The position numbers were made by a program, and so were the translations under genes. From contig NW_026262734.1 of the NCBI RefSeq assembly GCF_021869535.1, positions 16,182,001-16,246,000 on the forward strand: a DNA stretch of 64,000 bases, given 5' to 3'. How positions within the stretch are numbered: the stretch's first letter is position 1; each line of letters opens with the position of its first letter. The DNA comes from Mytilus californianus (lineage: Eukaryota). The notes below the pieces were generated by a model. That model did no database searches, was not told the origin of the DNA, and saw nothing but the letters and a program-made list of their open reading frames with translations. This document shows positions 2,489 through 51,300 of this stretch, piece by piece.

Positions 2489-4578
2489 TCATTTCTTTGA
2501 ATGTTCCTCCAATATCATCACTATAGATTTATGACCATTGTCCGATGCAATGTCCAACGGAGATTTTCCATCAGTCCGTTGCATGTCTATATTAGCACTT
2601 CTCTCTAACAATAAACAAACGATATCCTCATGTCCGACTTCACATGCAGAGAATAATGGTGTCGTTCCATCAACTTTTGTTACGTTCACATTTAGATTAT
2701 AGTCCAGGAGGACTTTGACTACATTTTTATGTCCCATGAAACTAGCAAGATGTAGTGGGTATGAACCAGCGAACATACCAAAAACATGTTCTGGTACTGC
2801 GTTTTTAACGAACTCTATAGTAACTAATGTACCGTATTTATTTGCAACATTGAGCCAACTTTGTTGTACACTTTTAATTTTCTTTGGCGGATGCTTAGCT
2901 ATAGAATCTACAATCAACTGTTTGCTTTGTAGACATTTATTACAGTCAGCTCTTTTAGCTAATAACAACTCTACAATGTCTGCAAAACCATTCCGGGTGG
3001 CTGTCAAAAGTGGATTGTCGCCATCATACATCTGTGCATTTATGTCCGCGTTATGTTCAATCAATAAACGGACAACATCAATATGATTTTTCTGAGAGGC
3101 CATTCTAAGAGGAGTTCCACCGGCATTGTTACTCAAATTGACGTTTGCATTATTTTTCAATAACATTCTCACGATGTCTGTGCGACCATTTTGCGCTGCC
3201 ATGTAAAGTGGAGTTACACCATTGGCTCTACTTACATTGACATTACCATTGTTAGATAACAACCACTCCACTATATCAGCATAACCCTCACGACATGCCT
3301 TTATAAAAGGAGTATTGCCTGCTGCAAAGTCCTCTCTTTCGTTATCCTTCTTATTGGCAAGATCGTTTCGTTGAGACTGATTCATTTGTGCAAGATTATG
3401 CAATAGATGTTGCCTAAATTCAGGAATTCTCATGCTATCATTGTAGAACACATTTGTGACTTTCCCGTCTGACCAATCTGAAATCAGTCTTTTTAAATAA
3501 GATTTGAGGTTTTTATCAGGAAGTCTTATTGTAAATTCGACATCATTTTCGTGATCCTCTTTAGTTACCTTCCACACGACACGTTCACGTAAGAAACTAC
3601 TGTCTCCATGCTTTATGACTAAATGTATCATTTTCATACCAAAATAGTGCGCAAAGAAGTCGAATAATCTGTCATGCAAACTGCTATAAACATTAATCTC
3701 TTTAGAAATATATGTACCAACTAAAGTGTCAGCAGCAACTTTCAGCTTCATCCTAGATGTTCCTCTATTCAGTTCACAAGCTTCAAAAGTGTCATCTAGG
3801 AGTTTTCTTTGTTCGTCAGCAATCTCTCCTGTAAAAATTTCTCCATCCAGTTTGTTATTATAGAGGACTATCATTACTAAGGAACAAATTTCCATCAACC
3901 CTTGATTTCCAGAACAGTATAATTTATCTAGTTCGTTTTTATACATTTCAAACGGGCGTTTGAAAAACATTTGCACGTCCATATCCGGTTTTCGACGACA
4001 TAGAGAACAGAGGAGTGGGAAAGATTGTTCTGACACTTCAGTTAAATCCAATTCATCCGCATATTTACCAAAATATGATTCTGCCATCTTCGTTTTTTCT
4101 GATCCTGTTAGACGCAATTCATCGGATGTCAAATTACATTCACAAGACTTGAAAGGTCGAGATAATACTCCAAACTGTCTGTCCTTATAGACTTGTAATC
4201 TACAGGTTACAATGATCTTGCAACATTTATCTTCTAATATTGTTTTAATCACAGGTAACAACTGTTGCCACTTTTCAATTTGCTGTTGGCTAGCAGTGAA
4301 TTTTCCACATATATCATCTACAACAAAAACCGTCTTCAAACCAGGTTGATAGTAATTTCTAATGTCTGTTGACTCTGTCACTGGTATTATTATGTACCTA
4401 TCTTTCTGTAAAATCAGCGCAACATGTCTGGAAATAAATGTTTTCCCTACACCGGCACTGCCTGTTATGGTCACGCAATTGTTGTCAAGTACGCAGTTTC
4501 TGACATGTTCACTGGCTCGTGTAAATACAAATGATCTGTCTTTGAGGACCCAGTCCTCAATCTGTAGTCTCATTTGGG
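2489..4578 (-). CDS. Terminal exon: STAND-class (nSTAND3-like) NTPase, helical region and 7 ankyrin repeats
   Basis: Walker A GSAGVGKT, Walker B VFVVDDICG, IIVTCR motif; seven GxTPL..A-type ankyrin repeats; acceptor TTTTCTCAG at 4579. Confidence 0.92.
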
Positions 4579-7500
4579 CTGAGAAAAGAACAAAAATCGA
4601 ACTTTACACATGAAATCACATAATGTTCTGTTCATTTGAGAATGTTTCCTTTTGAAAATGGTGCTTTCTGTTAAAGCTATGATTTTTCTTGTCTCTTTTA
4701 TATCTTCTTTTATCCTATGTTATTTATATCAAAGAAAACAGTCCAATACCAGGTAAATAATCAACGAATCAAGTAATCAACACGGAATAAGAAAGAAAAA
4801 AAAATGAAGATTCATCAAACGTTACTCTTTAAAGAATGATACGAGATATGTTGATATGGCCATTCTCTCCTGTTCATTTATATTAAGTATAATTCAGATA
4901 ATATTCCATAAACATACATACGAGATAGATCAGACTTTATGTATTGGAAAAATAGAAAGACATGGTCCCTTCTAGTCGGCTTAATCAATAAAATTAAATC
5001 CAATTACCTCGAATATTTCCAGGAATAACTTCGTGTAGTTCACTTTGTATCTTTTTTAAGTTCTTATTTACTTGTGATATCATGTCTTGTCCTAAATGAG
5101 AATAATAAAAAGGTAATAGTTTTCATATACATTCCCTACTTTCATTAATTGTATTTTCTCAGTTCTTATTTATGTTGTTGTTTTGGTAGTTTTTTTACAT
5201 GTCTATTGTCTAGATTGCATATATTATTGTTCTGAAAATGTTTAGAATTATATTGTTTATGTGTTAAATAATTAAAGTTTAGTCTCTTTTAAATCTTTAC
5301 ATTACATGGTAGGAAATAAAAGTTATTGGACTAAGGTAGTATACGATTGCAAAAAACATCGTAATAACATTAATCAGATATTTACCTTGTTCTTTCATCC
5401 TCTGCCTTTCTCTAAATTTCACCATTCCTATAAATAAGTGAATGAAAATTGTATCTGAAAAGTTGCATGAACGTTATGAAATTCAACATGCATTTGATAT
5501 ATACGAGTATCTAAACGGAAATTATAAAATATGTATAAAAACATGTATTATCTTATATGATATAATAAGGTGTATGTACAATTAATATTATTCAAATATG
5601 ATTGGACGACTTTGCACAATAAAACATCCTAGCTGGATGATCTCCAGCCGTATTATCAGTTATAACTTTGTAGTGGACAATTGACAGTTTTCATGTGCAA
5701 CAATATAATAAAATATTATTGATACAGAAAAAGTGAAACTTTACCAAAGGACAATTAAAATTAGCAAAAACAAAGAAAAACGGACAGTGTCATACCAAAT
5801 TTTTTTTAGATGAAACGCAAACAAAACTGAACAAAACCCCTTCGCTCTACAACTTCATACTTTTTTTTGGCATTCTAAATTTTTTTGATTTGAGTATTTT
5901 GTAGACGAAACGTGCATCTGGCGTACAAAATGATAAGCCTTGTGTCTATTATAACATTATTCACAAAAGGCAAACAATTACGCAATATAAAGTTTTATTT
6001 CGTGCATTTTGTTATTTTTTGTAAATTACCTATTTGACATAACTCCTTATCATGCGTTGTCACCTCAGTATTTTCAAGGTCATCTACAATCTGTTCATAA
6101 GATGCATATCGTAGAGCTCCCAGAAACATATTGTATACGTTTTCATCTTTGCACACTAATTTAGCCAATAGACGTCTATTACTCTCTTGTTTTGTAAGGT
6201 TAAGAGTACATATTTCCTCTCGGTCTTCAGGTTCTAGGACTTCTGATTGTAGAAGATGGTCAACTACATCTGTTGTACAATCCATATCGTGTACCAACAC
6301 GTTGTAGTTTTTCTGTAATTTTATTGTATTTGTGTTAACAACTACAAAATAAAGAAAACAATTCAGTAACGGACAGTTACTGATACTATATAAGATGTTT
6401 GTGAGCTAAGGATGACGTACTATATAAGATGTTTGTCAGCCAATAGATTTCATTAAAAAAACTAGCGCCATCAACTGTTACCATACCAAATGTTGCAAAA
6501 TTTATAAGAACTTATTGTGCTGCGCATATCCAAATAAAATTTCTAGTCCGCCCTGCTAAAAATTAATGTTGGAATCCTAAAGTATCAAATAATTTTAACG
6601 GCACCAGACTTGCATTTCAAAAATTGATGTCACATCGAAAGATCAATTATCTCCAAAAAACACCGAAAAGGGTGTCAAAACCAGCTGCGGTCTGTTAGGA
6701 TAAACAATGCGTTTCGAGAAGGTAACCTTAAAATTAACATGAGTGTAATTGTGTATGCACCGAATACATGTGTCTAGTCATTGAGGCTCAATACACAATA
6801 TAAGATCACAAAAGTACCAACACCAGAAGTTCAATAAACTCAAAAACAATACGTCAAAGCACGTCAAAACAAAGTATTGAACGCGTGAGTTTCCAGAGGA
6901 TAACATTAGAATCATACGGCTCATTGTCAATAAATATCAGTCAAGTATCAAATGAATGAACAAAATGATGTTGTCAATAAATATCAGTCAAGTATCAAAT
7001 GAATGAACAAAATGATGTTGTCAATAAATATCAGTCAAGTATCAAATGAATGAACAAAATGATGTTGTCAATAAATATCAGTCAAGTATCAAATGAATGA
7101 ACAAAATGATGTTGTCAATAAATATCAGTCAAGTATCAAATGAATGAACAAAATGATGTTGTCAATAAATATCAAGGACAGAAATGCATACCAACAAAAG
7201 TAGAAGTTCTACTTCGTGATGCACATTTAGAATACGACAATTTTATTTTGTGTGCTTCATAGCCTCTCATATCGTAGCATTATGGCAAACCCTGGTTTTC
7301 TTTAATTTCATGTAACTGTTACTACTTACTAATTTCAGTCTGTGAAAGACTGGAAGGTTCTTCACTCTTCACTCTAATTTTCATTCTATTAAATAGTTCT
7401 TGGACATCAGAATTACACTGGTCCAATTGTATCAAGGTATCTTTACATGGCTGGAAATTATCATATGGACGTTCCGTTAGGATTTCCAAAAGAACTTTAT

Positions 7501-9339
7501 TACGTTCAAACTGTGTTGTCGGCTTTATTATTTCTTCTCTGTCCTCTATCATTATAATACATTTAGAAATAAGGTTATCCAAAACATGTTTGTCCAGTAC
7601 TGTTATATGAGCTACTTTATCAAGATGAAGAGGAAGTCCTTGTTGGGGTTGACCTGAAGATAAAATATACACAGCAATATTAGATAAGCAGAATGGGGGT
7701 TCTAGTATATAAAACAGTTTGTCCAGTACTGTTATATGAGCTACTTTATCAAGATGAAGAGGAAGTCCGTGTTGGGGTTGACCTGAAGATAAAATATACA
7801 CAGCAATATAAGATAAGCAGAATGGGAGTTCTAGTATATATAAAACAGTTTGTCCAGTACTGTTATATGGGCTACTTTATCAAGATGAAGAGGAAGTCCG
7901 TGTTGGGGTTGACCTGAAGATAAAATATACACAGCAATATTAGATAAGCAGAATGGGAGTTCTAGTATATAAAACAGTTTGTCGGTGACTACCATAAGTA
8001 ACAAGCAAAATGTGGAAAACAGTTTGATAGTTTTCAAACTTAAGGATGTTCGCTACTCTGTTTTAAAATAACAAGCTTTTTAAAAGACTGTTCTAAATTT
8101 ATAGTATATAAATAAAGGAACCAAAAAAGCAGAAAAAAATGAAGGGTCCGTGTACTTGTTTTTGAGATATAAGCCATTGAAAATTTGGCGGGAAATGATT
8201 CTCTCTAGATTTTTCATACTTTTAACATTGTCCGCTTTTCTCTTTTAAAAACTATGAAAAAATAACAAGGATTTTATAAGATTTTCAAATATGGCTTTTA
8301 AAACTATATGAAATAAAATTATGAAAAGAAAAGTAGGGGTTAGTGGACAAAATTATTTAATGGCAAAACATGGATAAAACCAGAGGATTCCGAAAATCTG
8401 GCAAAATTTTAAAAACCAGAGGAGCGAGCATCCTTAAACATAACATTTGTATATGATCGAAAAGTGTACCTATTCGTATGGTTAATCCTCTCACAAAAGG
8501 TCTTTGTTAAATTTGAAAGCGTTGCTCTCGTCGCTAATCTAAAATTATGGGCATTTTTTTCTTTTCTCTTAGTAAGTGTGTTCTTCTTTTTCATTAATGT
8601 CTATCCCTGGTTATAACTCCATCTAAAAACTATGATAATTTATGAGGAGGGTAAATGGTTGACAGGTGTATTTAACACGCATCCGACCAACATAGAGATA
8701 GGAATCAATGCTTCTCCTCATTTGAAAAGCTTTCAATGGTCATTCGATCTAGCGGTATATGGTAAAGTGTATTAGGGAATTATTAGTATTTGAAAATGAT
8801 TTACTGAAATGATGTGGTTCCTTCACCAATACAAATGACCATCGTGAATTGTATGAGGGTTCAGAAAGAAACGAAAATTTTATTTAAGAAAGTGTAAGGT
8901 TACAATTCCTTTTATGGCTGTGAGTAACATACGATTTGAAAAACACAATAAACCATTATGTGGGGCCCTTTATAGCTTGCTGTTCGGTGTGAGCCAAGGC
9001 TCCGTGTTGAAGACCGTACTTTGACCTATAATGGTTTACTTTTATAAATTTTGACTTTTGGATGGAGAGTTGTCTCATTGGCGCTCATACCACATCTTCT
9101 TATATCTATATACCATATTCGATTAAAAACTAACCTATGTTTGAACTAGACAAAGACTGTATTTCTGTCGATTTGTTGCTTTTTGACACTTTATCTTTAT
9201 CTTTATGGACTTCTGTTTGGACAGCAACACCATTTAATTCTATCGATCCATGTTGAAGAACATCATTATTTGTTTCTGTTGATGTGCGAAGAGAAATATC
9301 ACTGGTGTCTGGCTTCATATCTGATGAGGCCATATCCAT
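2489..9339 (-). CDS. CARD-CARD-nSTAND3 NTPase-ankyrin repeat protein (NLR-like), about 1018 aa, 6 coding exons
   Basis: Exons 9339-9135, 7653-7330, 6341-6030, 5427-5386, 5091-5008 and 4578-2489. All introns are GT-AG, all phase 1, and join in frame (3057 nt). The start ATG at 9339 is tentative (in-frame TAA upstream). Confidence 0.8.
5008..5091 (-). CDS. Internal exon (QDMISQVNKNLKKIQSELHEVIPGNIR)
   Basis: 84 nt, phase 1-1, TAG acceptor and G|GTAATT donor; joins the terminal exon as NIRAQMRLQ. Confidence 0.75.
5386..5427 (-). CDS. Internal mini-exon (MVKFRERQRMKEQ)
   Basis: 42 nt, phase 1-1, TAG acceptor and AAG|GTAAAT donor. Confidence 0.6.
6030..6341 (-). CDS. CARD domain exon 2
   Basis: LQKNYNVLVHDM..VVDHLLQSEVL..EDREEI..T.QESNRRLL..L...Y.MFL.AL fits the CARD consensus; 312 nt, phase 1-1. 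Confidence 0.85.
6925..7174. repeat. 47-bp intronic minisatellite, about 5.3 copies
   Basis: GTCAATAAATATCAG starts at 6926, 6973, 7020, 7067, 7114 and 7161. Confidence 0.95.
7330..7653 (-). CDS. CARD domain exon 1
   Basis: VLDNLISKCII..EDREEII..TQ.ERNKVLLEIL.ERP is CARD-like; acceptor TCTTCAG at 7654, donor A|GTAAGT at 7329. Confidence 0.8.
7591..7983 (-). repeat. 129-131-bp tandem triplication of splice acceptor plus exon start
   Basis: Unit starts at 7591, 7720 and 7851. Each unit contains TATTTTATCTTCAG|GTCAACCCC and about 63 nt of the CARD1 exon. Confidence 0.9.
8044..8433. mobile_element. Kolobok-type MITE, 390 bp
   Basis: TTAA on both flanks, GG...CC termini, about 27-bp imperfect TIRs (GGATGTTCGCTACTCTG / CCAGAGGAGCGAGCATCC). 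Confidence 0.75.
8967..9102 (+). repeat. Dispersed repeat (GGAGAGTTGTCTCATTGG family), forward copy
   Basis: Inverted copy at 9709-9843; fragments at about 29400-29545 and 36460-36500. Confidence 0.8.
9135..9339 (-). CDS. Probable first coding exon (MDMASSDMKP..., low complexity)
   Basis: Donor ATAG|GTTAGT at 9134 joins CARD1 in frame (NIG-QPQ); upstream acceptor at 9422. Confidence 0.6.
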
Positions 9340-9708
9340 GGGTTGTTTCGAGGGCTTTTCTTCAGGTTTTTATTGATCTCTTAGCTGGGATATCCCATTT
9401 AGTAAGTTGATTTTATAATATCTGCAAATAGAATGATAGTATTATGTTACTTATGTCCAAATGACTGCTTTAAAAGATATATGTTATGTATTGCAAATGC
9501 TTACTCCGTTTATGATTATTTATATAGGTTACACCATTTATTTGTACATTTAATTTGTAGTTTTCTACATATACTTGTGATTTGATTCTAGTATTTATTT
9601 ATCACCATTTCGCAAAGTCAGTTTTTGTTTTTACTGCTTCGTTTGAGACGAAATGTTCAATTTGTATACCAGTTGATCTGTTTGCTATATACAATTTTTA
9701 ATTGGAAA

Positions 9709-26258: not shown

Positions 26259-26837
26259 TCATGAAATCTTGACACGCTTTACCATTGGTTCACCGATTGT
26301 TTCTACACTATCTTCTGTAGCCATTTCAACCATTACGTTAGCACACTTAGGATCACCAGTGTCTTCATACTGTATACACACAACAAACGGATCACCTGAA
26401 CCACTTTTCTCAAAGTGAACTTTAGTACCCTCTATTTTATGTTCGGAAGATTCGTCAGTAATTTCATTATTGCCATTACAAATGTTTTCTGCGATAGCCT
26501 CCTCTAAGTTCATACTTGTTGGCATATCTAAGTTAGAACTGGAAACATTGTCTGTGGATGAACACATACTGGTGGCAGGGGACACCTCCTGTCCAAGTTC
26601 TATACTGTTTTGTGGCAGGTATTGATGGTTCTCGGTTGACATTGTATTTAATATTAAAGGAACTGGTTTATATTCACGTTTAAGATTAAGTAAATGTTGA
26701 TGAAGTAAACTCCTGTGTTGATTTTCCATTTGTTTAAGAATGTTTTCTATATTTTTGTCTAGGGGTACACTCAACTGTTCTAAATAATCCTGTTCACGCT
26801 TCTGATATTCTGCTATTTCATTTCGCAATTCATTAAC
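26259..26837 (-). CDS. Terminal exon of the zinc-finger gene (coiled coil, acidic tail, basic C-terminal PMVKRVKIS)
   Basis: Acceptor TTTTGTAG at 26838; 193 codons to the stop. Confidence 0.8.
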   Translation of the reverse strand, partial: VNELRNEIAEYQKREQDYLEQLSVPLDKNIENILKQMENQHRSLLHQHLLNLKREYKPVPLILNTMSTENHQYLPQNSIELGQEVSPATSMCSSTDNVSSSNLDMPTSMNLEEAIAENICNGNNEITDESSEHKIEGTKVHFEKSGSGDPFVVCIQYEDTGDPKCANVMVEMATEDSVETIGEPMVKRVKIS

Positions 26838-44317: not shown

Positions 44318-44875
<558 letters not shown>

Positions 44876-45365: not shown

Positions 45366-48300
45366 GTATGTTTTGACAATGTCTTAAGGTCAACAGTTAC
45401 AATGGGTTTTGTCACAGATTTTTCTAAAATTTTGCATACACTTTTGGCATGTTGAACTATAACTGAAAATCGAGAAAAAAAATGCATTTATCTCTTTTAT
45501 TATCTGAAATATTACTGATTGAATTATTTCAAGATAGGTGAACACTTGTACAGAAAGCACACAAAATCTGCAAAAAACCTTCTTAAATTTGTCTTAAAAT
45601 CATCAAATCTCTAATTTCTAATACATAGGTTTTTCTTAAAAAACGATATGTTGTTGATACATAAATTTCTGTTTTAATGATATAAAGTAATCATATGGTC
45701 ACCGACTTTGTTTTTTGTCTAATAATCAATCTGTTACCTACATGTAGTTGGTACTGAAAAATGTCTAAAATTAATGTTTTATTGCCTGCAACGCGATGAT
45801 GTTACGATTATTTCGAAGTTTTATAGTATTTTTTCACATAGAACACCCCTTTGAATGATGTATACTGTAAAAACGAAGTGAGTGACCCTATCATTCATTA
45901 AAACAAAAATTTAAGAAGGTTTTTTGCAGATTTTATGTGCTTTCTATACAAATGTGCACCTATTTTGAAAGAATTCAATCAGTAATATTTCAGATGATAA
46001 AAGAGATAAATGCATTAGTTTTTTGCTTTTCAGTTAAAGTTCAACGAGCCAAAGTTGTATGCAAAATTTTACTGTGACATAGTCCATTTACTCTAACTTG
46101 ACCTTAAAGTTTGATAGTAAACAACTAATTTGTGAGAAGGGAGATAACCATATATATCATGTATATATTATCGATATTTATACCATTAAAATACAATTAC
46201 AGTACAAATGTAGTAGGTGGACACTTTAACAATTACAGTAGTAGGTTGACACTTCAATAATTACAGTAGTAGGCTGACACTTCAACAATTACAGTAGTAG
46301 GTGGACACTTCAACAATTACAGTAGTAGGTTGACACTTCAACAAAATATTCTGCATACAAGGCTACAGGAAATTTGTATTTCGTTGAACATTTAAATGTT
46401 TGTTTCACTAATTATAAATGCAATGAAATTCCCAAAAGCTGCTTGCCACAAATAACTTATGAGTATAAATTGTAAAATAGAACAAGATCAATAATACCAG
46501 TATCTTAGAAATGTTAACTGAAAAAAACAATTTGATAGAAGAATCACAAAAGTTTATAAAAAAATGTATATAAATACAGAATACATTTGAACCTACTTTT
46601 GTACAAGCTCCAGGTGCTTAGACACAATGATAATACAGAATTTTTTTATTTATCAATGATGACCTAGATAACTTCAAGATGATAAATAGCAATAATAGTG
46701 ACTGATAATTCACAACATGCATCAGCAGGGTTTTCACAAAGATGAGTCCTGAACTCATGAAAATCTATCTGAACTCATTATTTTCTCACAATGTGAATGA
46801 TGGGTTAGTCTATAGCTAAAGATACATCATCATGATCATGATTGTATCACAATAAAAAGCTCAAGTTATAAACTTAGACTTATTATATCTTGTAATGTAT
46901 TACCTGTTTTGAAGCTTTAAAATCAATTTAATGGATTTAATACACAATAAGAATGTAAAGTTGATTAAATTCACAGTTGTCTTCTGTTGATCTAGTTCAT
47001 ATCATGTTATAATTGCAGATCTGTCATAGAACCTGTTAGGAACACAATATTTCGGCAGCCGGATCATTTCCACTTATCATTTGCTACAAAACTAGATATT
47101 GAAAACAAAAAAATACATTGTGAGAGTGTATTGAAATCTGAGCTGAAATATACAATAGACTTTGATAAACTGTTGATTGGTGTAGGAGCTTTGAGTAATA
47201 CGTTTAACGTGCCTGGCGTTCAGGAACATTCCTTCTTTCTCAAGGTAAGATTTAACGTGCCTGGCGTTCAGGAACATTCCCTCTTTCTCAAGGTAAGATT
47301 TAACGTGCCTGGTGTTCAGGAACATTCCTTCTTTCTCAAGGTAAGATTTAACGTGCCTGGCGTTCAGGAACATTCCTTCTTTCTCAAGGTAAGATTTAAC
47401 GTGCCTGGCGTTCAGGAACATTCCTTCTTTCTCAAGGTAAGATTTAACGTGCCTGGTGTTCAGGAACATTCCTTATTTCTCAAGGTAAGATTTAACGTGC
47501 CTGGTGTTCAGGAACATTCCTTCTTTCTCAAGGTAAGATTTAACGTGCCTGGTGTTCAGGAACATTCCTTCTTTCTCAAGGTAAGATTTAACGTGCCTGG
47601 TGTTGAGGAACATTCCTTATTTCTCAAGGTAAGATTTAACGTGCCTGGTGTTCAAGAACACTCCTTCTTTCTCAAGGTAAGATTTAACGTGTCGTGTTCA
47701 GGAACATTCCTTCTTTCTCAAGGTAAGATTTAACGTGCCTGGTGTTCAGGAACATTCCTTATTTCTCAAGGTTAGATTTAACGTGCCTGGCGTTCAAGAA
47801 CACTCCTTCTTTCTCAAGGTAAGATTTAACGTGCCTGGTGTTCAGGAACATTCCTTATTTCTCAAGGTAAGATTTAACGTGCCTGGTGTTCAGGAACACT
47901 CCTTCTTTCTCAAGGTAAGATTTAACGTGTCTGGTGTTCAGGAACACTCCTTCTTTCTCAAGGTAAGATTTAACGTGCCTGGTGTTCAGGAACACTCCTT
48001 CTTTCTCAAGGTAAGATTTAACGTGTCTGGTGTTCAGGAACATTCCTTCTTTCTCAAGGTAAGATTTAACGTGCCTGGTGTTCAGGAACATTCCTTCTTT
48101 CTCAAGGTAAGATTTAACGTGCCTGGCGTTCAGGAACATTCCTTCTTTCTCAAGGTAAGATTTAACGTGCCTGGCGTTCAGGAACATTCCTTCTTTCTCA
48201 AGGTAAGATTTAACGTGCCTGGCGTTCAGGAACATTCCTTCTTTCTCAAGGTAAGATTTAACGTGCCTGGCGTTCAGGAACATTCCTTCTTTCTCAAGGT

Positions 48301-51300
48301 AAGATTTAACGTGCCTGGCGTTCAGGAACATTCCTTCTTTCTCAAGGTAAGATTTAACGAGCCTGGCGTTCAGGAACATTCCTTCTTTCTCAAGGTAAGA
48401 TTTAACGTGCCTGGCGTTCAGGAACATTCCTTCTTTCTCAAGGTAAGATTTAACGTGCCTGGCGTTCAGGAACATTCCTTCTTTCTCAAGGTAAGATTTA
48501 ACGTGCCTGGCGTTCAGGAACATTCCTTCTTTCTCAAGGTAAGATTTAACGTGCCTGGCGTTCAGGAACATTCCTTCTTTCTCAAGGTAAGATTTAACGT
48601 GCCTGGCGTTCAGGAACATTCCTTCTTTCTCAAGGTAAGATTTAACGTGCCTGGCGTTCAGGAACACTCCTTCTTTCTCAAGGTAAGATTTAACGTGCCT
48701 GGCGTTCAGGAACATTCCTTCTTTCTCAAGGTAAGATTTAACGTGCCTGGCGTTCAGGAACACTCCTTCTTTCTCAAGGTAAGATTTAACGTGCCTGGTG
48801 TTCAGGAACATTCCTTCTTTCTCAAGGTAAGATTGATTTATAACCAGTCCATCATGTTAACCTGTCTGACCATACATTCAACTCACCAGTTACACTCTGT
48901 TTGAAAATGCCATTGAAAATTATCTAATTAAATACAAGTAATCTGCACTTTACTTAACTCACCCGTTACAGATCAGCCATTTCAGCTGTACAGAGTAGAT
49001 TGTGCCACTTATTACACAGTAATGGTTTTATTGTCCCATATATACGAAATTCATCTAAAAATTACTTATAACTTTAATATAAAACAAAAAATGAAAATTC
49101 ATCAGGAACACACAATGGCAAATGTTTGAAAGCCAAGGATGTGTAAGAACCGAAACAGTTGAAGAGCTGTATGACCAAAAAGGAACTAAAAATAATAGCC
49201 AAATCAATCTTTGGTCAACTTTGCCTGAGGGAGTTGAAACCTTAGTTTCTTATAAAGATCTTGTTGAATCTGCGAAAATAATAAATTTTTCTGACTACAA
49301 AATATTTTATTTTTCTCAATGACTATTTTTGGATGGATTAAAATCTTTTTATTTTATCTTTTCTTAAATATAGGAAGTAGCAGATGCCAGGAGAATAAGG
49401 AACAGAATATTAAAGAATTTTGAATTGTCGGTACAGCCAGGAATAGAAGAATCAGAAGCAAATAGGCTATTACATACAGTCATTGTAGGAGGGGGACCAA
49501 CCGGTGTGGAGTTTGGTGCAGAGCTTTATGACTTTGTAGAACAGGTAAAGTAAAGAGGTTACATGATCATGGACATATGATATAAACTTGAAATCTTGAT
49601 CTTTATCAGCAAATGTTAAAATTGGATAGGAGTCAGATAAGGTCATGAGTAGACTGAAATCTTGAATTATGTGACTCAGGTTACTCTAAATGTATGGTAC
49701 TACTATTACATTATACAAGGCTTATCCACCATTTATTCATGAGTTATTTTTAAGATTACAAACTTTGCAAAAGTTTTTATTTGAACACTGCATGTTTTCT
49801 AGGATATTTCCCGTCTGTATAAGCAGAAGAAACATCATGTAAATGTAACCCTCGTAGAATCTAATCAGATCCTCGCATCGTTTGATGAAAGTCTAAGGAA
49901 ATATGCAGAGAAAAAGATCAAAGAAAGAGACAGGTTTCAACTGGTCAAATCAATAGTAACAGGTAATACTGAGTTATCGTCAATGAATATCACGTGTTAC
50001 ATTAATGTTTTAGTACATTACAAAAATCACCAAAAAAAACCTGGCAGTCTGTCTATTCAAATTTATATTTATCTGAGGTTCACATGACAGTCAGCAATTT
50101 TCAGAGGTCATGTCAACATGAAACAGGATTCTTTATAACAATTCCATGCATTGTTTATTGTTTCCTATGGAACCTTTGTAAATTGGATATATGATTTAGT
50201 ATGTTATGAATATGTTTGAAAGTTTGAGTTATTAAGGTGGGCATAATACTATGGAAATAATGGATACATAATAATATAGTGATGTGTATTTCATAATTTA
50301 GATCACTAACAATTACTAGCTAGTTCTAATAAATATATACTACTAATGTTTAGTGTGGCCAGGATAAGGAACCAGCCAGTACTTTCTGTATCTAACTAAA
50401 AAATGTTAAAATTTTCAATAAAGTATGAAAAAAAAAAGTATGTGGACATAATTTTGCACCAAATGCTGCTTTAAGATACATACATAATTAAGTTTTGATT
50501 CAATAAGAATTTTAGTCAGTACATTTTGTTTTAGAGGTGAAAAAAGATTGTGTTATATTAAGTAATGGAGAGACAATACCATGTGGAATGGTTGTATGGA
50601 GTGGCGGTATAGCTCCCCGACAGTTTGTCAGTGATTTAGATCTGAAAAAAAATAAACAAGGACAGGTAAATACTTATAGTTATCAATAGAATGTGAGACT
50701 TGGATATATGAATACAATAAGATTTGGATATACATCATTGAGACAGCAACCCAAGGACAAATAAAAAGACATCTAGAGATCTCCATGCTGTCTACAAATA
50801 AAAAGACATCTAGAGATCTCCATGCAGTCTACAACTAAAAAGACATCTAGAGATCTCCATGCTGTCTACAACTAAAAAGACATCTAGAGATCTCCATGCT
50901 GTCTACAACTAAAAAGACATCTAGAGATCTCCATGCTGTCTACAACTAAAAAGACATCTAGAGATCTCCATGCTGTCTACAACTAAAAAGACATCTAGAG
51001 ATCTCCATGCAGTCTAGAACTAAAAAGACATCTAGAGATCTCCATGCAGTCTACAACTAAAAAGACATCTAGAGATCTCCATGCAGACTACAACTAAAAA
51101 GACATCTAGAGATCTCCATACAGTCTATAACAATAAACAGGTTTCTATGTGATATTGTAACGTTTTGGGGTTTTCGAGTCAGGATACCTGTCGTTACTTA
51201 TGTGGGCCTTTGGTGAAGGAAGTAATAATAAAAACCATATTGGAGTTCATAAATTGTATTATTTCTGCTTAAGCAATACAACAAATACAGTGGTTCATAA

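Follow-up and report, generated by a model that had tools for sequence, protein, structure and literature searches.

A tandem-CARD nSTAND3-ankyrin gene of the mussel Mytilus californianus encodes a candidate NLR-like receptor

Several families of immune and cell-death proteins place a STAND NTPase between an N-terminal effector head and a C-terminal repeat array, among them vertebrate NOD1 and NOD2 (one or two CARDs, NACHT and LRR), the apoptosomes of Apaf-1, of Dark and of CED-4 (CARD-NB-ARC-WD40) and bacterial Avs5 (SIR2-nSTAND3-TPR). Here, we describe LOC127711329, a gene at 2489-9339 on the minus strand of a 64,000-nucleotide stretch of the Mytilus californianus genome (assembly GCF_021869535.1, contig NW_026262734.1, positions 16,182,001 to 16,246,000; hereafter the window), whose product is predicted to join two CARDs in tandem (2CARD) to an nSTAND3-type NTPase and seven ankyrin repeats. 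The gene is intact and transcribed, and it is already annotated, only as uncharacterized.

NOD1 and NOD2 share with the mussel protein the tripartite order, the CARD heads (tandem CARDs also in NOD2) and a similar fold of the nucleotide-binding and oligomerisation domain (NOD). However, they have NACHT and LRR where the mussel protein has nSTAND3 and ankyrin, and there is no orthology. The apoptosome proteins likewise carry an N-terminal CARD directly on a STAND NOD, but the mussel protein lies below the NB-ARC cut-off, has ankyrin instead of WD40 repeats and two CARDs, and belongs to a multi-copy, lineage-specific family. Among solved proteins, RIG-I and MDA5 alone have a CARD pair of which each member can be aligned with the mussel 2CARD (about 200 columns); their inter-CARD orientation differs from that of the mussel model (root mean square deviation, rmsd, 13-14 Å), and their body is an RNA helicase, not a STAND NTPase.

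The nSTAND3 proteins with a characterised function are the anti-phage Avs5 sensors, which are activated by filamentation (PMC11897194; PMC12931631 / bioRxiv 10.1101/2025.07.08.663546). Avs5 and the bacterial Mrr_cat- and PUA-nSTAND3 proteins have the PF20720 domain and the effector-NOD-repeat logic in common with the mussel protein, the 423-residue NOD module of which superposes on bacterial nSTAND3 models and finds the EfAvs5 and AVAST5 filament structures among its PDB matches. In contrast to the mussel CARDs and ankyrin repeats, the bacterial heads are enzymatic (SIR2, Mrr nuclease) and the sensors are TPR, Sel1 or PPR repeats. With regard to Avs5 (AVAST type 5), the mussel protein has neither a SIR2 domain nor a match to an Avs model, and its gene is eukaryotic, with introns. 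Fungal and basal-metazoan NLR-like proteins also set non-LRR repeats as the C-terminal sensor on a STAND NOD and combine them with various heads (PMC4986451, PMC13449251, PMC8195603), but their NODs are mostly NACHT or NB-ARC, and the fungal repeats are often highly internally conserved, whereas those described here share a mean of 37% identity with one another.

The same NOD and ankyrin body, single large 3' exon, genus and tandem arrangement are found in the Mytilus nSTAND3-ankyrin family, which includes HEPN_DZIP3- and SAM-CARD-CARD-headed proteins and appears in RefSeq and UniProt as 'Novel STAND NTPase 3 domain-containing protein'. The clade of LOC127711329 differs from its SAM-2CARD relatives in having a 2CARD head without SAM, on a body that groups with a HEPN-rich crown. 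Lineage-specific expansions in which death-fold domains occur together with STAND NTPases, HEPN and ankyrin repeats have been reported in sessile marine invertebrates (PMC8195603), and a survey of the tree of life lists nSTAND3 beside NACHT and NB-ARC among the NLR-type ATPases (PMC13449251). The novelty implied by the original prediction, a reading of the window's sequence, is thus smaller than it seemed, as the protein is in RefSeq, its relatives are named nSTAND3 in UniProt and the general class is published; our full-text literature search returned no paper specifically describing 2CARD-nSTAND3-ankyrin proteins or their Mytilus expansion. On the evidence of its domains, we class the LOC127711329 product as NLR-like in the broad sense. 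It is not an NLR sensu stricto, because NACHT or NB-ARC and LRR domains are missing, nor an Avs5 or Apaf-1 homologue.

Domains, folds and transcription of LOC127711329

The 1018-aa protein reads, in order, as a disordered tail, two CARDs, a helical linker, an nSTAND3 NTPase (nucleotide-binding domain, NBD, followed by a helical domain and a winged helix) and seven ankyrin repeats. The two CARD exons, the P-loop NTPase and the seven repeats had all been named in the original prediction, and each is present in the gene model and above its cut-off in hidden Markov model (HMM) searches, with the NTPase placed within STAND.

The assignment of the NTPase to nSTAND3 rather than to NACHT or NB-ARC, also proposed beforehand, is upheld by profiles and by predicted structures. 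Pfam nSTAND3 (PF20720) scores 90.9 bits (cut-off 27.2, E 8.9e-26) over profile positions 1-152 of 155, while the other NTPase HMMs stay under their cut-offs (NACHT 12.8 bits against 26.7, NB-ARC 12.0 against 23.5, nSTAND5 12.8 and NPHP3_N 15.9). The 5' part of exon 6 (4076-4578, minus strand) encodes a pre-NBD helix and the P-loop NBD (aa ~323-490), with the Walker A motif GSAGVGKT at aa 362-369 (window 4439-4462; K368), the Walker B motif VFVVDD at aa 406-411 (D410/D411) and the sensor-1 residue R449 in IIVTCR. These catalytic motifs are intact, and across 84 homologues the Walker A Lys, the Walker B Asp pair and the sensor-1 Arg either do not vary or are kept in at least 90% (alignment positions G45/K46, D88/D89 and R127). 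The middle part of the exon (3329-4075) encodes aa 491-739, with the helical domain, the winged helix and additional STAND-module helices, including a nearly invariant LHD motif in the winged-helix region (aa 623-625) that may recall the MHD motif of plant NLRs.

An AlphaFold2 (AF2) model of aa 323-745, built on the alignment of the 84 homologues, was obtained with a pLDDT of 88.5 and a pTM of 0.83, and consists of a P-loop alpha/beta core, a helical domain and a winged-helix unit of a helix and a beta-hairpin. When it was compared with the PDB by Foldseek, the matches were NLRP3, EfAvs5, NLRP14, Dark, NOD2, Avs4, Apaf-1, RPP1 and NLRC4; each had a probability of 1.0, over 430-520 columns, but the TM scores were 0.46 or less because the domain orientations differ. 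By an independent structure aligner, only STAND proteins match the model over more than 260 residues (MalT, Z 12.9 over 318 residues; NLRP9, 12.5 over 338; NLRP3, 12.3 over 327; NOD2, 11.6 over 312; also NRC2, SAMD9, NLRP1 and an archaeal STAND-TPR protein), while generic AAA+ proteins align over ~180 residues only. Among ESM Atlas models, bacterial Mrr_cat-nSTAND3 and PUA-nSTAND3 proteins superpose at TM 0.71-0.74 (380-393 residues, rmsd ~4 Å) and molluscan nSTAND3-ankyrin clusters at TM 0.81. Profiles and models together argue for an NTPase of the nSTAND3 type, with NBD, helical domain and winged helix, and not for NACHT or NB-ARC. No SIR2 domain was found in the Pfam scan of the long exon, and the NCBIfam scan gave only ankyrin-driven, sub-threshold matches (Legionella ankyrin effectors, MzaA), which are uninformative.

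The two CARDs differ in the strength of their matches. CARD2 (6030-6341) reaches 58.1 bits (E 8.8e-16) with the Pfam CARD model, and CARD1 (7330-7653) 24.5 bits, just over the cut-off of 23.9. The profile of CARD1 finds the CARD of Apaf-1 (E 4.6e-5) as well as those of RAIDD, BCL10, MDA5 and RIPK2, and aligns with the CARD2 profile at 96% probability (hhalign, E 1e-9). In the AF2 model of aa 60-300 (pLDDT 78), both CARDs fold as six-helix bundles; in the second bundle helix 1 is split, as is typical of CARDs, and a long linker helix follows. Because of the profile matches, the alignment to CARD2 and the six-helix model, we regard CARD1 as a true CARD. The CARD2 model superposes on the Apaf-1 CARD with Z 16.0 (rmsd 1.5 Å, 89/91 residues), followed by the CARDs of RIG-I, MDA5, NLRC4, CARMA1 and CARD8; by sequence, its best PDB match is the second CARD of MDA5 (E 7e-5), and the NOD1 CARD is among its nearest CARDs. 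The only two-domain structural matches of the 2CARD are the tandem CARDs of MDA5 and RIG-I, in a different relative orientation.

The 3' part of exon 6 (2489-3328, stop codon 2489-2491) encodes the ankyrin array (aa 740-1018), in which seven repeats stand in register from aa 740, 773, 806, 839, 924, 957 and 990; an insert of 52 aa separates the fourth repeat from the fifth. Pfam ankyrin families match it with E 1e-37 to 1e-53 (Ank_2 177 bits, Ank 160 bits) and no LRR family was matched in the Pfam scan; the C-terminus is ankyrin, as the original prediction had it. At 37% mean identity, the repeats do not show the high internal conservation of those in fungal allorecognition NLRs.

The interval 2489-9339 runs exactly from stop codon to start codon and holds six coding exons, not three: two small linker exons (5386-5427 and 5008-5091) were added, and the CARD2 exon starts at 6341. 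Splice-phase testing places the exons at 9339-9135, 7653-7330, 6341-6030, 5427-5386, 5091-5008 and 4578-2489, where the list of open reading frames (ORFs) had a 694-aa open exon (2489-4573, minus strand) and CARD-like ORFs at ~5995-6300 and 7322-7801. All introns are GT-AG and of phase 1, and the coding sequence of 3057 nt gives 1018 aa with no internal stops. A nearer AG, which would start the CARD2 exon at 6312, was rejected since it breaks the frame, while the start at 6341 restores it and matches the RNA. The spliced model is residue-for-residue identical to the RefSeq entry 'uncharacterized protein LOC127711329 [Mytilus californianus]' (1018 aa), found by a word-index protein search.

RNA contigs assembled from one study, in three sets from as many samples, and the raw reads of a stranded RNA-seq run from a second study were aligned to window 4300-9400. 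Exactly the five predicted junctions were recovered (4578/5008, 5091/5386, 5427/6030, 6341/7330 and 7653/9135; CT..AC on the plus strand, hence GT..AG on the minus); one contig bridges exons 5-4-3-2-1 and another exons 6-5-4-3, and in the raw run the first mates over the exons lie on the plus strand only, as for minus-strand RNA in a dUTP-type library. The CARD exons are thus spliced to the NTPase exon, and the effector, STAND and repeat parts stand on one polypeptide, encoded by a single six-exon ORF. We reject a pseudogene or an assembly artefact in view of the intact ORF, the RefSeq identity, the spliced RNA in two studies and purifying selection.

Exon 1 (9135-9339) carries the start codon at 9339 and a disordered, Ser/Thr/Lys/Asp-rich tail (aa 1-68) that matched no Pfam family; its donor is ATAG/gttagt, and its junction with exon 2 occurs in RNA contigs of X1, X2 and X4. 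Exons 2 to 5 are all symmetric, of phase 1-1. Exon 2 (7330-7653) encodes CARD1 (aa 69-176) and exon 3 (6030-6341) CARD2 (aa 177-280), the junction between them being present in X1, X2 and X21 and the one between exons 3 and 4 in X1, X2 and X4. The 42-nt exon 4 (5386-5427) encodes a basic linker (aa 281-294) that lies within the long helix of the AF2 model (~272-293) and is conserved in 2CARD relatives, and the 84-nt exon 5 (5008-5091) a further linker (aa 295-322), with its junctions 5091/5386 and 4578/5008 seen in contigs and in X21 raw reads (3 and 7 reads, respectively).

Around the start of exon 2, a tandem duplication of 129 bp in 3.1 copies (7581-7983, minus strand; 96% matches by Tandem Repeats Finder) has a unit that joins the first 72 nt of exon 2 to 57 nt of intron 1 sequence that includes the acceptor. 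The acceptor motif is thereby present three times (7921, 7790 and 7661), and with the two upstream decoys exon 2 would begin at 7782 or 7913; the frame stays open through the middle copy, for 43 extra codons without a stop, while the upstream copy is closed by one. In the RNA contigs, the 3'-most acceptor is the only one in use, and the duplicated stretch is not part of the observed mature mRNA. A tandem paralogue of the gene has a single 129-bp copy, and therefore the triplication arose after gene duplication. In exon 1, RNA contigs of two samples show an in-frame 6-nt deletion at 9189, inside a short AAAGAT-type repeat encoding Lys-Asp; the paralogue lacks the same two Lys-Asp codons, and the deletion looks like a slippage polymorphism in the disordered tail. 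Within intron 1, the stretches 8040-8400 and 8960-9115 reach RNA and contig depths in the thousands on both strands, with many variants and loose ends, and are dispersed repeats or transposable-element fragments unrelated to the exons of the gene. Intron 2 holds a perfect 47-bp tandem repeat in 5.3 copies (6924-7174).

A Mytilus family with exchanged heads

The paralogue, LOC127711330 (1013 aa), is likewise intact, lies head-to-tail with LOC127711329 and has the same six-exon structure; its start, 9.8 kb past the LOC127711329 stop codon, falls a little outside the window. Purifying selection acts on the two genes, with an overall Nei-Gojobori dN/dS of 0.32 (NBD 0.15, helical and winged-helix domains 0.27, ankyrin array 0.33, CARD1 0.67 and CARD2 0.85). 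In exons 1-3, the dS between the two genes (0.05-0.13) is 3-4 times lower than in exon 6 (0.23-0.35). This points to gene conversion in the 5' (CARD) half, or else to a duplication with a mosaic history.

A search with the nSTAND3-ankyrin body returned 161 clusters, all named matches of which come from five Mytilus species, a distribution that rests on word-based searches biased towards close relatives and is no claim of absence elsewhere. The heads found on these bodies are DZIP3-type HEPN, CARD, BTB with CARD, or none. The search with the 2CARD region gave CARD-CARD-nSTAND3-ankyrin proteins, some with an additional SAM_NCD1 domain, of 830-1556 aa from at least eight loci in M. californianus. 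In a maximum-likelihood tree of 128 NOD modules, in which incomplete gene models inflate the classes 'short' and 'other', LOC127711329, LOC127711330 and two close relatives form their own clade (100% support) on a long stem (0.58), and this clade joins the HEPN-rich crown (97%) and not the all-CARD SAM-2CARD clade (99%). The CARD state changes eight times on the tree, at least six of them on well-supported branches, against 26.5 times when shuffled. The family is thus a large Mytilus expansion in which heads (2CARD, SAM-2CARD, HEPN, BTB-CARD or none) have been repeatedly exchanged on one body. Repeated head exchange is typical of immune STANDs.

The 2CARD of LOC127711329 is 50-52% identical to that of the SAM-2CARD clade, while the NODs are only 40-42% identical; to crown members, HEPN-type or headless, the NOD of LOC127711329 is 53% and its ankyrin array 46% identical. 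Within its own clade the 2CARD evolves faster than the NOD, and therefore the heads appear younger than the bodies, which favours head transfer by exon shuffling, a process that classically works on symmetric exons of phase 1-1. It is also possible that an ancestral 2CARD was retained here and replaced by HEPN in the crown.

A membership so expanded and varied bears on the idea that these are trafficking or cytoskeletal scaffolds, like vertebrate ANKRD50 and TANC1/2, in which CARDs would serve as generic interaction modules. Some relatives have been named automatically as 'ankyrin repeat domain-containing protein 50-like' or 'ankyrin-1-like', there is the weak NPHP3_N match (15.9 bits, below cut-off), and conservation extends to the ankyrin array. 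We nevertheless find the idea very improbable, as CARDs are known only from signalling in death and inflammation, the head of sister subfamilies is a HEPN RNase, which is a toxin-type effector, bacterial nSTAND3 relatives are fused to Mrr-type nucleases, and a massive lineage-specific expansion is atypical of trafficking scaffolds.

Mussels suffer from transmissible neoplasia, and one could imagine that the family detects non-self conspecific cells, tumour cells included, in the way that fungal NLRs with ankyrin, TPR or WD repeats detect non-self. Such a role would suit an expanded, head-swapping NLR-like family in a sessile, aggregating animal (a theme of PMC8195603) and has a parallel in the fungal NLR-like ankyrin proteins that act in allorecognition (PMC13449251). 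However, the mussel repeats are without high internal conservation, the sensor is not hypervariable between close relatives and an intracellular receptor would need access to foreign cytoplasm, so we give allorecognition the least credence of all.

The 2CARD-region search also gave short, 2CARD-only proteins. One of them is encoded by LOC127710515, at about 86.9 Mb of an M. californianus chromosome. The annotated product, of 347 aa, combines a hydrophobic, transmembrane-like N-terminus with a 2CARD, and frame-broken nSTAND3 and ankyrin remnants directly follow the last exon of the gene. It is a receptor gene decayed to a 2CARD-only product, analogous in origin to mammalian CARD-only proteins; because NOD and ankyrin remnants adjoin the 2CARD, it is a truncated receptor gene and no dedicated adaptor. 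In view of this gene, the sole M. californianus example examined, and because this 2CARD type was otherwise found only on nSTAND3-ankyrin bodies in the word-based search, the idea that short 2CARD proteins act as downstream adaptors was rejected as a general claim.

Mammalian CARD-only proteins modulate caspase-1, and the LOC127711329 product, or truncated 2CARD-only derivatives, could in the same manner, with no signalling of its own, modulate other 2CARD receptors of the family by hetero-oligomerisation or by capping CARD filaments. Truncated 2CARD-only products do exist, at least one from a decayed receptor gene, the 2CARD is ~50% identical to that of the larger SAM-2CARD-nSTAND3-ankyrin clade, and the CARDs are under relaxed constraint (dN/dS 0.67-0.85). 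We hold this to be improbable, however, since a mere decoy would not need the intact NOD motifs under strong purifying selection (dN/dS 0.15), and the complete architecture is kept in both tandem copies.

A candidate sensor switch and its rivals

We consider that the LOC127711329 product is probably a tripartite STAND receptor, with the 2CARD as signalling head, the nSTAND3 module as oligomerisation switch, the ankyrin array as sensor, and cell death or inflammation as output. To our knowledge, every characterised STAND protein with an effector head and a repeat tail works as such a switch. What the data above establish is the structure of the gene, that it is transcribed and spliced, which domains it encodes and how they fold, that the catalytic motifs are intact, and that the gene is tandemly duplicated, under purifying selection and part of a large head-swapping family.

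As to its mode of action, we infer, by analogy with the characterised STAND and NLR proteins, ligand sensing by the ankyrin array, oligomerisation, a CARD partner and an immune or cell-death output. At rest, the NOD would hold ADP and the array would keep the protein closed. A ligand, be it a microbial or viral molecule or a perturbed host protein, would bind the array, the presumed autoinhibitory sensor, and allow the nucleotide to be exchanged and the NOD to drive oligomerisation, either into a ring or into a filament like that of bacterial Avs5. The oligomer would cluster the 2CARD heads into a helical seed, onto which partners with a CARD would be recruited and polymerise through homotypic CARD-CARD contacts. 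Precedents are RIG-I and MDA5, whose tandem CARDs, once oligomerised, nucleate MAVS filaments, and Apaf-1, the CARD of which recruits caspase-9. Among possible partners, an adaptor with a CARD or the CARD-caspases that have expanded in molluscs would be the likeliest, and the output would probably be inflammatory signalling or cell death.

Several observations weigh against this receptor reading. With the single sequence and with the 84-sequence profile, no solved STAND, Avs5 included, was detectably related by sequence, and only P-loop matches such as McrB were returned; likewise, the PADLOC models gave no Avs match but only the candidate system PDC-S73 (E 1e-13) and ankyrin-type models. No CARD partner was identified: the 2CARD-region search showed no caspase, helicase or kinase fusion, and in this word-based search the 2CARD type was found fused to nSTAND3-ankyrin bodies only. 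Expression depth was low in the RNA runs examined. Finally, in close relatives the ankyrin array equals the NBD in conservation, with a whole-domain dN/dS of 0.33, and variation is not concentrated at the canonical ankyrin contact positions (8/41 against 41/186, p 0.84, a low-power test on four sequences). Diversifying selection on the contact surface, which we had considered, is thus unsupported by this weak test. The original proposal was of an immune receptor acting by CARD-CARD contacts within a system akin to an inflammasome or apoptosome. Its architectural part is fully supported; its functional part is unsupported, with no partner identified, the sole stand-alone 2CARD gene examined decayed, and the ankyrin array not the fast-evolving part.

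The CARDs and their resemblances raise the question of caspases. In mussels, 12 caspases with a CARD prodomain have been counted in M. coruscus (PMC10967218), a lophotrochozoan-specific 'caspase-Y' group of CARD-caspases has been defined, and no Apaf-1 has been found in any mollusc genome (PMC10959488). It is tempting to speculate, although we regard it as doubtful, that the 2CARD-nSTAND3-ankyrin receptors, with or without SAM, are the missing activation platforms of mollusc CARD-caspases: a bacterial-type NOD, possibly filament-forming, would have been wired by exon shuffling to death-fold signalling and would replace both Apaf-1 and the inflammasome NLRs, ligand binding seeding CARD filaments that activate caspase-2 or caspase-Y.

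A rival reading, in which the platform activates these caspases in intrinsic, stress-induced or developmental death and the ankyrin array reads an endogenous signal instead of sensing pathogens, would have the protein fill the role of Apaf-1. Molluscs and annelids are without detectable Apaf-1, their CARD-caspases have diversified and cytochrome c release is still seen (PMC10959488), and M. coruscus has a dozen CARD-caspases (PMC10967218). In addition, the Apaf-1 CARD is the best structural match of CARD2 (Z 16), the best PDB matches of the CARD1 profile are Apaf-1 and RAIDD, the partners of caspase-9 and caspase-2, and a sensor domain that is conserved and not fast-evolving fits an endogenous ligand. 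However, a housekeeping death platform would be expected to be single and conserved, whereas this family is lineage-specific, tandemly duplicating, head-swapping and, in word-based searches, found in Mytilus only; moreover, the likeness of the CARDs to Apaf-1 is at the level of the fold (about 21% identity). We judge an apoptosome substitute to be unlikely.

Neighbouring features and wider meaning

Beyond the gene, a 138-bp repeat in four copies in its 3' flank (1383-1935) creates a spurious 217-aa ORF, and copies of the unit also occur in the 9-kb intron 4 of the paralogue. Elsewhere in the window, a 171-aa ORF on the plus strand (44360-44875) has a cytidine/tRNA-adenosine deaminase domain (dCMP_cyt_deam_1 84 bits, MafB19-deam 90 bits), a long minisatellite at 47131-48904 is open in several frames on both strands, and a 189-aa acidic, Ser-rich ORF on the minus strand (26259-26828), with no Pfam match, may be an exon of an unrelated gene.

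Should the proposed function fail, LOC127711329 would be one more annotated member of a large lineage-specific family. As no mollusc Apaf-1 is known, the route by which mollusc CARD-caspases are activated is an open question (PMC10959488), and two Apaf-1-like CARDs set directly on a predicted oligomerising STAND switch make this protein a clonable candidate for a mollusc CARD-caspase activation platform. Moreover, nSTAND3, the NOD type of bacterial Avs5, is here used in an animal with death-fold heads, which appear to be exchanged through symmetric phase-1 exons.

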